Below the pieces are notes generated by a model. The model had not been told where the DNA came from, searched no databases, and worked only from the letters and a program-made list of their open reading frames with translations. A DNA stretch of 63,902 nt, the filler included, from Choristocarpus tenellus KU-1152 (Eukaryota; Protista; Phaeophyceae), in NCBI GenBank assembly GCA_964200185.2. It is 11 parts of 11 records of this genome, joined end to end, with 100 filler letters (N's around TTAATTAATTAA, not from the genome) between each part and the next. Parts side by side here need not be neighbours in the genome. Positions count along the whole stretch, not along the records: positions 1 to 9,494 come from CAXNAD020003632.1; 10 more parts are not named here. One strand, 5' to 3'. Made by a program: the position numbers and the translations under genes. This document shows, in pieces, positions 76 to 10,041 of the stretch; the first letter of the stretch is position 1, and every line of letters begins with the position of its first letter.

Positions 76-3000
76 CCTCTCTCATGTAACTAGGGAATAG
101 TGCAGGTAGGATTTTCAACCCAAAGCCACACCTGTTATATTCCCAAAGTTGTCCATGAACGTCACGGAAGGCTGTCTTATGTTTGTCTACCTCTGCGATT
201 TCTAGTTGAAAGAATCCCGACGCTAGGTCTATGGCAGTTAAAATACCTAGAACCCTTAAGCTTATCAAAGATGCTGGTGATGTTCCTGAGACCTCCACTA
301 TCATTTCGCGAGAGATCATTAAGCATCCTATAGTCCGTGCACAACCTCAGGGTCCCATCTTTCTTACGTACTGCGACAACTGCTGCTGCCCACGCTGAGG
401 TGGAGGGTCTATTGATATCACGTTCCTGCAACTGCTTAACCTTGGCCTGAATCATCTGCGTTTCTTCGGGAGAGAAGCGCCTTTGTTTTGCTGCGTAGGG
501 TATACAGTTCTCGACTAATAGTGGTATGTGTAGTACTCCTCTAGAGCATGGGGGAACTCGTTTGAGATCTTCAGGGAATACCCCTAATTGTCCAAATCCC
601 TCTAACAATTCCACCAACTACTGTTTCTTCTTCCCTGGTGTCAGCTGTCCCATATTGGCATCGTTAAGGCTCACCGATTGATACCGGACCCCCTTGGCTT
701 CATCTGAAAGGATGTCTTCTTCCTCTGCTACCGGGCAGTCACCAGTCTCGTCTGCTTCTGGGGGATGCCTTGTCTGAGAACTAGTTGTGGCAAGCAGGAC
801 CTGTGCTCTTTGAGGGTCTTTGGGGGGTTTGGTTAGTGACTGAAAGAGTGCAACCACCCTCTCCCTATCCTGAGTATTCAGAGCAATCGCCTTTGCAACA
901 GGCAGCCCTGCCTGGACACTACTGGACTTACTGCACGTATTTACCAGCTTGCAATAAATGGGATTCCCTAGGTTCCACCATTGTACACCTCTGGCAACTC
1001 TGACAGCATTTCCTAATTCCAGGTTATACTCTGATAAGGGCTCAATCACCACCAACTGTCTGGATTGTGGTTGTGCCCCCCTAACGAATCCTTTGCAGAC
1101 TTTGCTGACAAACCCTTCTACATGTTCTACTTCTGAGAAACGCAATTCCCATTGCAGGGTCCCATCGTCCTCCCACGCTACTTCTACCGGAAGGGGTACT
1201 AGTCCTGGACTCTTCAGTCATGGGGTCAGAGGATCCTTGTCTTGGGTAAGATCTATTGTTGCGATACCTGCCTCTGGATCCGCATCTGAGGTGCCTGCTT
1301 CTGGGTCTACATAAAAAAACTTGCATGTTCCTTCTCTGGTTGCGTATGTTCACCAGTTGGAGAACTAGTGCATCTTGAGAATCTAGGGAGTGCGTCAGGG
1401 GGGGGTTCTCTACATCCAGCTGACCTGGGGTTATCAGGAGGTAGTCTGTGGTACTTGGATGGTCGGGTTGTGGGTGTCATTGATGCTTGCCACTTTCCCA
1501 GGGCTGACAGGGTGCATTGTTATCACTAGATCTGGGTGTCACAGCTCGGACAAAAGGTATCCATGGTGAGTTTGGAGCTGGTCGAAAGCCTTCCCCCTCT
1601 CTAAATGACAGTATGCTCTTGTGCTGCCTACAGAATGCTGCTCCTAGAACCATCCCGTAAGGTAAGCCTTCCGCTACTCTGAATGTCACATTGCGGACTC
1701 TATCCTCTGGGGGAAACAATATTGGCAGTATGCAGGACCCTAGTACCTGCATGGGTGAAATACTGCATCCTTTCGGATTTGCACGTGTGACGTACTTTTA
1801 CCTGCTTGATTAAGATGCGGTAGGTCGGTGCTACCCCCCCAGAGAGTAGTACTGCGCCAAAAAGCAGATGAAATGTAGTTCCAACCTCCTGCACCTGTGT
1901 CAAGGAGTATCTGTACAGGCATTCTCGAGCGGACTTTGCGAGGGTTCCACAGCAGCACAGATAGCCATACTTGACTAGTTCGTTGGGCAGTTGACATAGT
2001 GGATATTGTCGTGGTGGATGTGGGGATCATGCTTCCTATGGCTACAGTGGCTAAGTTCCCTGGAGTTGAAGACTCCAGGGCGCACCTTCAGGGTAACTCA
2101 GGTGCTTTAGAATGGGTCGGGGCTACTTGTAAATAGTGGCGGAAACTCAAAGTCCTGCATCGTGGCAAGGTAATGCAAATGGGAGTTTGTCAAGGCTACC
2201 ATCGTACGCGACTCATTCTTTGGGGTAGTACTTTGCTTGTCTTGGGAAAGATATGCGAAGTAACTCTTAGGTACTATGGAGTCGTCGTGGGTATACCTCC
2301 ACCTGCGGCTGATAAACTTGAAGCAGTCGCGACCGAAAGTGTGGTGGAAGCAAACTCGATTTTCCTCAAGCCACTCGACAACCTCATCTTGGAAAGCAGA
2401 TGGTAAAGGTAAATCCTTGCCCGAATGGTGTCGACCTGCATCGCTTGCTCTGTCTGTGGCTAAAGAAGACGTGGATCAGGGCACAGACTGGGTGGCGGGT
2501 GTTGCAGGTCGAACAGGTGCGGATGCATTGCTCTTAGAAACGAAAGAGGTCCCATGCTTCCCAAGAACAGAAGCAGATTGGTTTGTCAACGCAGCACAGA
2601 CAGTGGGCAGGGGTTTTGGGACAAAACAGGTTGGAGAATCGGTGCGAGGGCCGCCAGCACACTGTTGACCACCTCTTGGTGTGGTGGTGGACTCTGACTT
2701 GGCACCTCTCGTGGCAAGGATGTCCTGCTATGTTGGGGCAGTCCTAGTTCCTGTCTGTCTATCGGGGTTTCAACTGGGGCAGACAAAGGGTGGGGCATGC
2801 TTGCAAACAGAGCACGAGCATTAGCCATGCTACCTAAAGCAGTTGGTGTCTTATCTTTGTATGACGCAGATTTTGTAGCATTTTGATTGGTTGGGATAAA
2901 TGCGTCCTGGTCGCTACGATTGGACAATTCTTCAAATAGATCGCCAAAGATCCGTTCTACTTTAAATCCCCGCTGTACCATTTCATCTCCTAAAGGATTA

Positions 3001-5260: not shown

Positions 5261-5472
5261 TGCAGAAACAACAAGAATTGCTCCATCCATTTGAGCAGCT
5301 CCAGTAATCATACTTTCAACACAGAGTCGGCGTGACTTGGACAATCTACCTGAGCATAATGTCTTTTCTCTGTTTCATATTTCAACATGTGCTGTAGAAA
5401 TAGTAATACCTCCTTCTCGAGTTCCATCAATTTTATCGTATTTAGTAGCCTGAGCTTGCCGCCTTTTTGTTA
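5261..5472 (-). pseudogene. tufA: Bacterial-type EF-Tu relic, second half of the split fragment
   Basis: Translates, with two frameshifts, as TKRRQAQATKYDKIDGTREGGITISTAHVE/YETEKRHYAQVDCPSHADSV..K/MITGAAQMDGAILVVSA, the EF-Tu switch I to G3 region. Confidence 0.93.
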
Positions 5473-7397
5473 TAGTGTATCAGTAGCTTCGCCCTCTGGG
5501 GTTGTCCCATCATAACGTTTGATGTAGACATCGGATTAAGAAAATAAAAGCATATTCGTGATGCCCGTCACAATGCCCTCCAGAATACGGGCTTCGTTTT
5601 ATCACCATTTTGTTATTTTTTTCAAGAAAGAACGCTCATATTGGGGTTCGAACTCTGGGTTGTAGGTCACTAAGAGTGGCAACAGATACGCTATTACTTG
5701 ATTAAAGTATAGGGTTTAGACGGGAAAAACGCCTCCCTACCCTTTCTTCCTGTGTGTTCACGCACCCACTCTTTGACCTCGGTAAGGATGTCCTCATTGA
5801 CCCCCAGAACTAAACGCCCCTCGTAGTGCCCTTGCTCCGACACCTTGATGTGGCCCTTTCTTACTCACAGTTTCCGACCCGACCATTGCATATCCTGCTG
5901 CCATCTCGAGCGCTGTTTGATGGTCTTTCCCGTCGTTCATACACAGATGCATGATTCACAGTATTAGAGCCTTTACACTCACATTTCCTTCTTGAGCACC
6001 GGAAATGGGCATTGACCGTGTTTCCTGGGTAGGTGATATTTTATCAAGGCGCATAGGCGAGGGAGGACAGGCTTGAGCTGATCGAACATTTTGTCGATTT
6101 CTCGAATGAATGCAGGCGGGGAGAAAGACTTAATCAACTTTATACGTCCGACCCCTAAGTCCAGGAACAAAAGTGAATGTACGGCATCTTGCAAGAAGTG
6201 GGAGACACCAAACAATCGATATGCAAATAGTCTCAATCTCTCCTCCTCTTTTTTCCTGGCGTCTTAGTCAATGGCTACCTCCACCTGCTTCGTGTGACCT
6301 CTTCTAAGTAAAGGATTTGGTGGTATCGAAAAGTCTCCACAGTTGCCTTTACTACGATCACATTCTCCTCCGCCTTGCGAGCCCTTTCGATCATCATTTC
6401 GGGCTTTAGAGCCCTTGTATCCCAACCCTAAAGCCTTCTTTCTCGTTTCCTTAAGCCACTCTGGCTCACATAGCTTCCAAACAGCTAGGGCCTGCTGCAA
6501 CTGTCGACTGCCAAGATATTCTATACCCGGGTTTTCGCTTAGACGTTTCCTGAGTGCAATGGCGCGCAGTCGCACTGCTCTCCTCCCCAACCTTCCCTTC
6601 TGCCGGCCACTCTGGTTCTCCCTTCATCCGCCATGACCAGGCTTCCCCACAGACTTCATCACTGTACCACCTGGTGATGGACTTACCGCTCTCTTCCTGC
6701 TTTCCGGAAGCGGCAGAGACTGCAGAGTAGTGCTCTGACTTGGTTGAAGATTTAACCACGTTTGTGTGGTAATACTTCCAATGCATCTTCTCTCAGCGTC
6801 AGTGTCGCGGCCGCATGATCCCTTGCGCATTTGATCATGCTACTGTGCCACACTACTCGCACTTTCTCGTCACCTAACATCGCACTGAGTGTCACACGAT
6901 AATTGCTTTTCCGTCGCCTCTCGACAGAGAAGGTGCCGAGGGTAGACCCAGGGGGCAGAGTGGCCTCGGCGGCTCTCCTTGTCTCAGCGTCGTGGTTCAT
7001 GTTGCTGTGTGGGTCACGTGTGTGTGCGCTCATAGAAAGTCTGAAAAAGACGTAAAAAAGATGTCCGCAAACCTTCCTTTTCTTTTTGGTATCTCCACAC
7101 CAGCCAAAGTTCAGCAGGAACCTAACCCGGACCAGTGGTTTGCATGGAGTTCGGTCAACCACTTCATTTTGTCAGTTATAAAGTCTTCACCTTCAAACGT
7201 GCACTGGAGGTGTTCCCCTGTGTCTTTTCCATTAGTGGATCAGGACATAGCTTCCGTTCCCGACGTGTGAAACTTCATGGATACAAACGTTCAAAACCTC
7301 TTGTCATAACCTTCGTTTGGTATTATGTGGTTGTATAAATGTTGTAGCGTTCCGGTTAAACAAAGCAAGATTGACACAGAGGGCGAAGATACTGGTA
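5473..7397 (-). mobile_element. TIR-bounded element, copy A, carrying a degenerate ORF of unknown function
   Basis: Left end TAGTGTATCAGTAGCTTCGCCCTCTG and right end CAGAGGGCGAAGATACTGGTA are inverted repeats. Colinear with copy B. Broken minus-strand ORF from about 7310 to 5694. Confidence 0.8.
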
Positions 7398-8943
7398 TAG
7401 TGATGCCAATAGATACCAATAGCTTCGCCCTCTAGGGTGTCCCATCATAGCGTTTGATATAGACATCGAATTAAAAAAATAAAAGCATATTCGTGGTGCC
7501 CGTTACAAAGCACTCCAGAGTTCGGGCTTTGTTTTTTCGCCATTTGTTTTTCAAGAAAGATCGGTCATATTGGGGTTCGAACCCCAGTTTGTAGGTCACT
7601 AAGAGTGGCAACAGATACACTATTACTTGATTAAAGTATAGGTTTTAGATGGGAAAAAAAAATCCCTACCCTTTCTTCCTGTGTGTTCGTGCACCCACTC
7701 TTTGACCTCGGCCAGGTTGTCCTCGTCGATGCCCAGAACGAAACACCTCTCGTCATGCCCTTCCTCCAACACCTTGATGTGGCCCTTAGTTAGAAAGTCT
7801 TTCTCCCATTTACTCATAGTTTCCTACCTGACCATCGTATATCCTGCTGCCATCTCGAGCGTTGTTTTATGGTCTTTCCCATAATTCATACACAGGTACT
7901 GGATTCGCAGTGTTAGAGCCTTTACTATCACATTTCCTTGTTGAGCGCCGGAAATGGATTACCTTCTTTCGGCCTTCAGAGCCCTTGTATCCCAACCCTA
8001 ACAACTTCTTTCTCATTTCCTTCAGTCACTCTGGCTCACATAGCTTCCAAACAGCCAGGACCTGCTGCAACTGTGGACTACTAAGTTATTCTACACCCGG
8101 GTTTTCACTTAGGCGTTTTCCTCAGCGCAATGGGACGCAGTCGCACTGCTCTCCTCCCCAACCTTCCCTTCATCCGCCATGACCAGGCTTCCCCACAGAC
8201 TTCGACCCTGTATCACACCTCGTGATGGACTTTCCACTCTCTTCCTGCTTTCCCGAGGCGGCAGAGACTGCAGAGTAGTGCTCTGACTTGGTTGAAGATT
8301 TAACCACGTTTGTGTGGTAATGCTTCCAATGCATCTTCTCTCAGTATCAGTGTCGCAGCTGCGTGGTCCATTGCGCGCTACAGTATACACACTTTCTCGT
8401 CGCCTAACATCGCACCGAATGTCACACGATACTTGTTTTTTGGACGCCTCTCAACAGAGAAGGTGCTGAGGGTAGATCCAGGGGGCAGAGTGGCCTTGGC
8501 GGCTCTCCTTGTCTCACCGTCGTGGTTCATGTTGCTGTGCGGGTCACGCCAGTGTGTGCTCTCAAAAATTATCCCAAATGGTGCTAAAACGATGTCCGCA
8601 AATCTTGCTCTTTTTTTTATATTCCCAGAAGCACCCCACTAGGGCAGGGGCCTACCCCAGATCAGTTTTTTGCGGGGAATTCAGCAAACCACTTCAATTT
8701 TGTACCTTTTGAGGTTGTGACCATCAAAATTGCACCGGAGATGTTCCCCCGCGTCTTTGACATTCTTTGATCGGGGCATAGTTCCCATTTACTGGAAGTT
8801 AGTACATTCCGGCATACAAATCGTGAGCACCTCTTCGCATAGCCTTTCATTTGATATTTATGTTATATACTTCTTGTGGAAACACAGTGAAAAAAAGCAA
8901 GATTGCTCCATGACGCTAAGTTATTTATATCACTTTACTACCT
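7398..8943 (-). mobile_element. TIR-bounded element, copy B (internal deletion, decayed right TIR)
   Basis: Direct repeat of copy A lacking about A 6008-6393. Left end TAGTGATGCCAATAGATACCAATAGCTTCGCCCTCT; right end degenerate GCTAAGTTATTTATATCACT. Confidence 0.8.
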
Positions 8944-9049
8944 TAACATGGTTGTTATAAGAGATGTAATTGAAGTGTTACCATGATCCACGTCACCAAT
9001 AGTTCCAACATTACAGCGGGTTATTCTGTTCAAATGTTTCTCTTGGCAT
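8944..9049 (-). pseudogene. tufA: Bacterial-type EF-Tu relic, N-terminal half
   Basis: MPRETFEQNNP/CNVGTIGDVDHGNTSITSLITTML, a decayed form of [33 protein letters not shown] (P-loop), with one frameshift. Confidence 0.9.
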
Positions 9050-10041
9050 AATTTTGTCTCGATATAAATAATAAGGTGGAGGGGATGGGGTTGTGGTGGT
9101 GATGGATAAAGGTGACGACGGTACACGAGACAGGCAGTGGCGAAGAACAAGTATAGGTGGAGGGTTTAACCCAGCTCTAGGAATAGACCACAGACTTCGA
9201 TTTCGCACAACGGAGAAGGATGGACAGAGAACAGAATGGGCCCATATGAGGACGAGGTGGAGGTGATCAAGGTTGGGAATGGCGGCCCATGAGATAGGTA
9301 CGGGCAAGGGGGGAACATAAGCAGAGCACACCACTCCTCTTCGGGAATAGGTAAACACGTTTCGTCTCTGCAGGATTGTGAAGCCCGAACGAGCACACAG
9401 GGGGATGGGGCCAGAGAGGTGGTAGAGGCACATGACGATGGTAGCAGGGATAGGGACCCACCCCTACACGGCGACGAGGAGGAGGAGGCAGGAGNNNNNN
9501 NNNNNNNNNNNNNNNNNNNNNNNNNNNNNNNNNNNNNNTTAATTAATTAANNNNNNNNNNNNNNNNNNNNNNNNNNNNNNNNNNNNNNNNNNNNGGGGGG
9601 GGGGGGGGGGGGGGGGGGGGGTAAAAGAGAGGGAGGGGGGGAAGGAGGGAGGGAGGGAAAGAACAAGGTGTGTTTACCTTTCAAGGGGTACTGGTGGGGA
9701 GAGAGCTCCCATTCAGCCTTTACGATGAGGCAGAAGGACTGATACCATACTATTGTTGTAGATTCAGTTCAAAAAATAAATGAGATCATACCTTCTCCCG
9801 CTGCGTACTTTGACTGTTGTGGTCTCTATCTTAACCAATCCGATCGCGACGGCACGAAGAGCAGGAGGCTCAACCAATCACAGTACAGTACAGTCAGTAC
9901 AGCATTGCTGCTAACACCACCAATAGCAACCATTAAAAAAGAAGAAAGAGGATTCCCCATCACGGAATATTCCTCACCAGAACGCGCATATATCATTAGC
10001 ACCAAAACAGATGGGAAAAAAAAAGAAGTGTGCATTCTCAC

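Follow-up and report, generated by a model that had tools for sequence, protein, structure and literature searches.

A nested pair of decayed repeats in Choristocarpus tenellus, very probably non-autonomous copies of a Sagan-type Tc1/mariner transposon

We identified the paired repeat at positions 5473-8943 of a 63,902-nucleotide stretch of Choristocarpus tenellus KU-1152 DNA (assembly GCA_964200185.2; the whole stretch is called the window, and the pair lies on contig C3632) as, very probably, two old, inactive and non-autonomous copies (A and B) of a Sagan-type DNA transposon of the Tc1/mariner superfamily. The original prediction had seen in the pair a unit of about 1.9 kb, bounded by terminal inverted repeats (TIRs) and carrying an unrecognised open reading frame (ORF), and had proposed either a Tc1/mariner-mobilised element with novel cargo or an undescribed class of element. 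The pair represents no new element class and contains no cargo gene; it is ordinary repeat DNA. The outcome matters little past annotation: the pair can be struck from the candidates for a new class of mobile element, and an abundant repeat family, present in at least several hundred copies, now has a description of its ends, its TA duplication, its deletion junction and its subfamilies.

The two copies, A (5473-7397) and B (7398-8943), are diverged and colinear, as had been predicted: their ungapped blocks are 86-92% identical, gapped BLAST gives an overall identity of 78-83%, and positions 6009-6396 of A are absent from B. The inverted ends of A (5478-5498 and 7377-7397, 21 nt) show a complementarity of 90%, and the predicted duplicated TA adjoins the pair at both sides (5471-5472 and 8944-8945). 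The right TIR of A (7372-7397, minus strand) breaks off at ...CTGGTA (7397), directly after its internal TA (7396-7397), whereas intact family copies read ...CTGGTACCACnT and then TA, that is, they go on with CCACnT before the flanking TA. Following the degenerate right end of B (...TATCACTT, 8935), whose TIR is heavily mutated, we found TA, CTACCT and TA (8936-8945), so that the stretch directly past B agrees with the expected TA-CCACnT-TA at eight of its nine specified bases. These positions are the duplicated target TA (8936-8937, the partner of 7396-7397), the missing last six bases of A, split off by B (8938-8943, minus strand; CTACCT against the family's CCACnT, one transition), and the flanking TA of A itself (8944-8945, the target-site duplication on the right of A). 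Because the six terminal bases of A and a second TA come directly after B, the arrangement is nested, with B sitting in the TA within A's right TIR, instead of the tandem pair originally described. The insertion of B doubled a TA that is single in intact family copies; the nested insertion therefore doubles as an internal empty-site test, and it gives the result that insertion duplicates TA. B itself (7398-8935, minus strand) has an extra internal deletion in comparison with A, with a junction near 7957-7967, and since the identical junction is found in the copy at locus L013 (contig C15081), B can be assigned to a shorter subfamily. Compared with the family TIR, the left TIR of B (7398-7433) also has 10 bp duplicated internally (GATGCCAATA / GATACCAATA). 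We considered whether the element prefers to insert into the TA of its own TIR, and rejected this: among 70 ends, nesting was seen only in the window, and 60 of 70 other ends reach straight into their own terminal bases (TACCAC, at most one mismatch).

We searched the assembly (164 Mb in 27,310 contigs) for further copies and obtained more than 1000 first-look candidates for the 1.9-kb unit; 58 scored matches are about 82% identical to it, many of them spanning positions 1-1925 exactly. Aligned ends define a family TIR of 27 bp, made up of two variable terminal bases and a perfect 25-nt core, GTGGTACCAGTAGCTTCGCCCTCTG, in good agreement with the predicted length of about 26 bp. The left TIR of A (5473-5498, plus strand) has 26 nt and differs from the 27-nt family consensus by the loss of one G and by one C>T change. 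Allowing up to three mismatches, the core has 648 matches in the genome and none for the reversed control, a difference that chance cannot account for. The family termini are TAGTGG... and ...CCACnT, the first base being T or A, not C, and a search for subterminal repeats past the TIR gave none. In 69 distinct ends, terminal sequence conservation ends exactly at the flanking TA: 50 of them have TA as the dinucleotide adjoining the terminus, and the two positions farther out show random bases. The TA at 5471-5472 is the target-site duplication on the left of A. A TA target-site duplication together with short TIRs and CAGTG-like termini places the family in the Tc1/mariner superfamily, and to that extent the original proposal of a Tc1/mariner-mobilised element stood.

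All copies of the family that we examined are decayed. Identity to the family consensus is 88.9% for A, 81-89% for B and 85-92% for other copies, and no intact reading frame was found among the 74 loci examined. Copies with perfect TIRs were considered as young intact elements and rejected, being decayed alike (86-92% identical to the consensus), and a longer element sought on contig C164, where two perfect TIRs are separated by 13.7 kb, was discarded as well, since just one of the two ends comes from this family. The family looks extinct in this genome and is presumably inactive as a whole at present. Beside the 1.9-kb form (the short form) there are further deletion types, exemplified by L066-type copies, and a relative of about 250 bp, the size of a miniature inverted-repeat transposable element (MITE), is present in L036. 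ARAGORN detected no tRNA, despite a GGTTCGAAC-like motif at 5643-5651 and 7581-7589.

The minus strand of the window is the sense of the element's ORF, and on this strand both A and B hold a long frame interrupted by stops and frameshifts. A long, broken and supposedly intronless frame had indeed been predicted. The original prediction regarded the frame as a non-transposase ORF. We read it instead, from sequence comparison, as belonging to the transposase of the family itself, of which it is the N-terminal part that precedes the catalytic domain; in the long copies L054 and L056 the frame runs into the DDE region. Using the majority consensus of the family copies as a coordinate system, we observed that sequence carries on beyond position 1700 in L046/L051, and that the ORF is unbroken beyond position 1701, into ...NMTAENFRQYINDTVMPKV..., in L054/L061, L056 and L052. 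In L054/L061 and L056, one open piece spans the deletion point of the short form (...EVKEWV.EH.GRK.G.AN.T..NFRQYINDTVMP...), and in L032/L063 a segment encoding PKYHCEL.PIE lies between the two arms of the element. The putative catalytic motifs stand in order in L057: QDESI (first D), KKGDGQGIMISG, FDWSSCH (second D), KLKGM..ERGLL and PKYH.ELN.IE (E), with a probable GT...AG intron of about 257 bp (L057:449-706; ...TCGAG|GTACAC ... TGACTGCAG|TTAACG) just past the first D. Upstream, L014 retains a 283-amino acid (aa) open frame from the N-terminal domain through the basic and helical region. Further long copies (L063, L066, and L068) join the E region to a 3′ end identical with that of the short form.

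Comparison with L054, L056, L066 and L068 located the junction of the short form at ...GGAGGC|(G/T)TTTTTCCC, which can also be read as ...GGAGGC|TTTTTTCCC, with GGC (3 nt) common to both breakpoints. The short form equals the long form minus about 1.9 kb; it has both ends and internal sequence in common with the longer coding element, lacks the catalytic domain, and is more numerous (catalytic-region pieces have 17 and 30 matches, against the more than 1000 candidates for the short form). The 1.9-kb form contains no DDE motif because the internal deletion removed that region. This bears directly on the proposal of a new element class, or of a Tc1/mariner-mobilised carrier with a novel non-transposase cargo ORF, as in Fanzor-bearing elements. 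Such a proposal could draw on the unit's own ORF pieces, which lack a Pfam match (nine pieces of the short form gave no meaningful one), and on the missing DDE motif set. But in the long copies a DDE gene has this ORF as its upstream part, in frame, the N-terminus agrees with the beginning of an Ectocarpus Sagan-1 transposase-type protein, and no TnpB, Fanzor or RuvC family appeared in Pfam and NCBIfam scans of any ORF piece, so nothing resembling a Fanzor cargo was encountered there. The proposal is already contradicted, and we give it practically no chance.

Homologues of the family's protein were found in public data, Ectocarpus included. A word-based search with the E-region piece retrieved Ectocarpus sp. 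CCAP 1310/34 proteins at 52-58% identity, and a profile search of 1.84 billion representatives returned 3224 proteins at E ≤ 1e-3, including proteins of 948-1089 aa with matching motif order (P0016, P0162, and P0030). The Ectocarpus protein P0011 (603 aa) is colinear with L054 and L057, and its matches to the window stop at the deletion point: P0011 matches window 7955-7668 (E = 6.8e-11) up to its residue 154, residues 115-154 match window 5858-5739 by tblastn (E = 2.7e-5), again ending at residue 154, and the P0011 sequence past this residue leads into the D-D-E region. BLASTP aligned the minus-strand translation of window 7623-7817, a 64-aa open piece of B that ends at the deletion junction (the GHIKVLEEGHDERCFVLGIDEDNLAEVKEWVHEHTGRKG stretch given in the original prediction), to residues 107-154 of P0011 (E = 1e-10, 38% identity). 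The N-terminus of a second Ectocarpus protein, P0002, matches both window 6752-7162 on the minus strand (E = 3e-4) and the L014 ORF (E = 8e-8). Residues 1-50 of P0011 contain a reverse-transcriptase-like stretch (GLRQGCNLAPLLFN), and its gene model is probably a chimeric prediction across two repeats.

With these alignments copy A can be divided, on the minus strand, into a 5′ non-coding region ahead of the start codon (7001-7371; the start codon is placed by the P0002 alignment), a broken remnant of the transposase's N-terminal part, which starts with the Met of MNHD... and reaches the junction with ...HTGRKG (5731-7000; based on the ORF pieces and on tblastn and BLAST matches to P0011 and P0002), and a non-coding 3′ end beyond the internal-deletion junction (5473-5730; from the comparison of the short form with L054, L056, L066 and L068).

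The catalytic region of the long copies and the predicted fold of an Ectocarpus homologue were compared with known DDE enzymes. The E-motif region matched Pfam DDE_3 on three copies (E = 1.8e-5, 1.5e-3 and 7.8e-3; profile positions of about 105-143) and also matched NCBIfam IS630 (E = 1.4e-5), in each case below the curated cut-offs, and HTH_32, a helix-turn-helix (HTH) family, matched L056 weakly (E = 0.22). P0011 was modelled with AlphaFold2 (AF2) from 40 homologues, at a mean predicted local distance difference test (pLDDT) score of 78. The model's best matches in the PDB are Mos1 (4u7b, 3hos, and 5hoo; probability 0.96-0.99), the catalytic domain of Sleeping Beauty (5cr4; probability 1.0, target template modelling score 0.57-0.59) and Metnase (3k9j); the model is helical over residues 61-177, and its alignments to full-length Mos1 span 310-325 columns. 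The family is a distant relative of Tc1/mariner elements, because the fold of the homologue matches but sequence searches of solved structures found nothing.

Several points weigh against the assignment to a Sagan-type transposon. All Pfam and NCBIfam matches fall under the curated cut-offs and are limited to the E-motif region; no transposase came up when solved structures were searched with a profile and with single sequences, and the fold match was made on the Ectocarpus homologue P0011, not on this genome's protein. The long form was pieced together from overlapping decayed copies, so that its length and protein size are estimates, and the majority consensus contains an unexplained frame change at about 1300-1400 (roughly window 6050-6150), which may be a small intron or a consensus error. 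Lastly, the link from P0002 to the named Sagan element of Ectocarpus, Sagan-1_Ec32, relies on a translation by eye of a printed passage of its consensus.

That translation gave 71 of 72 equal residues between the Sagan-1_Ec32 coding start, in the printed consensus, and the first 72 residues of P0002, and through P0002 the family is homologous to the named Sagan element. A survey of Ectocarpus transposons reports 17 Mariner-Tc1 families with mostly non-autonomous copies, and its supplement lists Sagan-1_Ec32 (Repbase Sagan-1_Esi, class DNA/TcMar-Sagan) as a Mariner-Tc1 element of 4178 bp with TA duplication, CAGTG termini, a spliced gene and a printed consensus starting with cagtggta... (PMC12477816). 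The Sagan kind is thus already described within Mariner-Tc1, and the Choristocarpus family is not an undescribed class (PMC12477816). TcMar-Sagan is also a standing RepeatMasker class. Likenesses to Sagan-1_Ec32 include the TA duplication, short TIRs, termini of the form (C/T)AGTGGTA (the Choristocarpus family starts with TAGTGGTA, against cagtggta...), an autonomous size of about 4 kb, a homologous N-terminus and a homologous catalytic region; the transposase gene is probably spliced likewise, the probable intron after the first D in L057 being consistent with the spliced gene listed for Sagan-1_Ec32. The two are nevertheless separate families: their proteins are only 26-36% identical over the N-terminus and 52-63% over the E region. 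The TIR has 27 bp here against a reported 15 bp, the window has only internally deleted and decayed copies, and the copy number here is far higher than the 17 Sagan-1_Ec32 copies listed in the supplement (PMC12477816).

Like Mos1, Sleeping Beauty and Tc1, the family would move by cut-and-paste into TA and has CAGTG-like termini; an HTH region ahead of an RNase-H-like DDE/D domain would be a further likeness, Mos1, Sleeping Beauty and Metnase being the best matches of the homologue's model. In contrast to classic Tc1/mariner elements, the transposase would be about three times as long and would have an additional N-terminal domain; there is no significant sequence match to solved proteins, and the D and the E stand about 146-176 aa apart, against 34 in the classic elements. 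The range (146-176 aa, counted between the second D and the E) comes from the intact homologues P0011, P0016, P0162 and P0030, where the D/D/E residues are putatively assigned by motif and alignment; the insert between the two holds a conserved KG.KQ.LWERGLW motif. This very long spacing and the unassigned N-terminal domain of Sagan-type transposases may be of minor interest to transposon specialists, as may the empty-site test that the nested insertion offers. To our knowledge, Sagan-type transposases have barely been described in the literature.

The history of the pair is very probably as follows. The autonomous form, estimated at about 3.9 kb from overlapping long copies, would encode a transposase of about 1000 aa. 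Its N-terminal domain is small; next come a basic stretch (GRPKGR) and a helical, HTH-like region predicted to bind DNA, and then a DDE domain in which the D and the E are unusually far apart (about 146-176 aa, going by intact homologues). The 1.9-kb form arose through one internal deletion, which starts directly behind ...HTGRKGGEA and ends a little beyond the transposase gene. The whole catalytic domain was lost with it, while the two 27-bp TIRs, the 5′ region and the gene portion that precedes the catalytic domain were kept. This form would then have been copied to hundreds of TA sites by cut-and-paste, presumably with the transposase of full-length copies acting in trans, and B, from the subfamily with a second internal deletion, landed in the TA within A's right TIR. 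Such a course resembles that of other Tc1/mariner deletion derivatives and MITEs, which also have the ends of a rarer coding element, have lost the catalytic region and outnumber their parent; for example, TcMar-N1_Ec32 is a non-autonomous Tc1/mariner derivative that relies on TcMar-2_Ec32, according to the survey (PMC12477816). Unlike a MITE, the 1.9-kb form is much larger and retains the gene part ahead of the catalytic domain.

What the deletion left behind could suggest a function. Only the catalytic part is gone, whereas start codon, N-terminal domain and helical region are all spared, and the 1.9-kb deletion type far outnumbers the others; by analogy with the KP repressors of P elements, the short form might have spread because it encoded a truncated, DNA-binding-only transposase fragment that regulated transposition. 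We consider this very unlikely, as all examined copies are broken, even the majority consensus changes frame, and deletion derivatives commonly reach high copy number without any encoded function. A related idea starts from the N-terminal domain, which is common to Ectocarpus and this genome and which, with the helical region, is exactly what the 1.9-kb form kept. The AF2 model of P0002 (pLDDT 55 overall, 70-80 on strands) shows a helix, three strands and a long helix in residues 5-94 (alpha-beta-beta-beta-alpha). Sagan-type transposases may contain a conserved, uncharacterised domain of this kind, and the 1.9-kb form may once have made a DNA-binding-only regulator of, or competitor for, the family TIRs, a speculation to which we give a slim chance.

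We also compared the N-terminal domain with known families and folds. No Pfam family was found for it, VIA-align gave a best Z of 7.0, in the chance range (LptE and ribosome hibernation factors), with several double-stranded RNA-binding domains at Z 4.5-5.5, and the leads from an ESM Atlas search all remained under 0.9. We tested for an AP2-like domain, and no AP2 domain was listed by VIA-align with this low-confidence model (pLDDT 55). A domain of about 100 aa with no Pfam family and with fold matches at chance level only might be a host gene fragment captured and joined to transposon ends, as in Pack-type elements, and brown-algal DNA transposons are reported to capture genes (PMC12477816). 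However, the same domain also opens the genes of Sagan-1_Ec32 and P0002, so that any capture would predate the split of the two lineages and the domain would now be part of the transposase gene. Moreover, the 283-aa frame of L014 is open through the basic and helical region, and a later piece (in L054 and L056) crosses into the catalytic region, although the unexplained frame change lies between the L014-type and the L054/L056 pieces. A Pack-type origin seems to us highly improbable.

Other repeats were observed in and around the family. A different MITE, about 225-265 bp long and ending in a TIR of some 23 bp (AGT[C/G]AAAGTATCTTAGAGGGTAC...), is inserted at differing places in several copies of the element (L052:1283-1505, L015:1241-1500, and L014:1095-1356), and is also present near many other loci. 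On the minus strand of window 177-2030 there are decayed remnants that by eye look like Ty3/gypsy-type pol, including a reverse-transcriptase-like RKKDGTLRLCTDYRMLN in the ORF at 177-617 and a protease-like ILLDTGAGG in the ORF at 1740-2030; Pfam gave no match at E ≤ 0.01 for the window's flanking ORFs, these remnants included. To the right of the pair, window 9011-9433 has a proline- and serine-rich frame in common with L073:739-1329, and the sequence there is probably a further repeat family.

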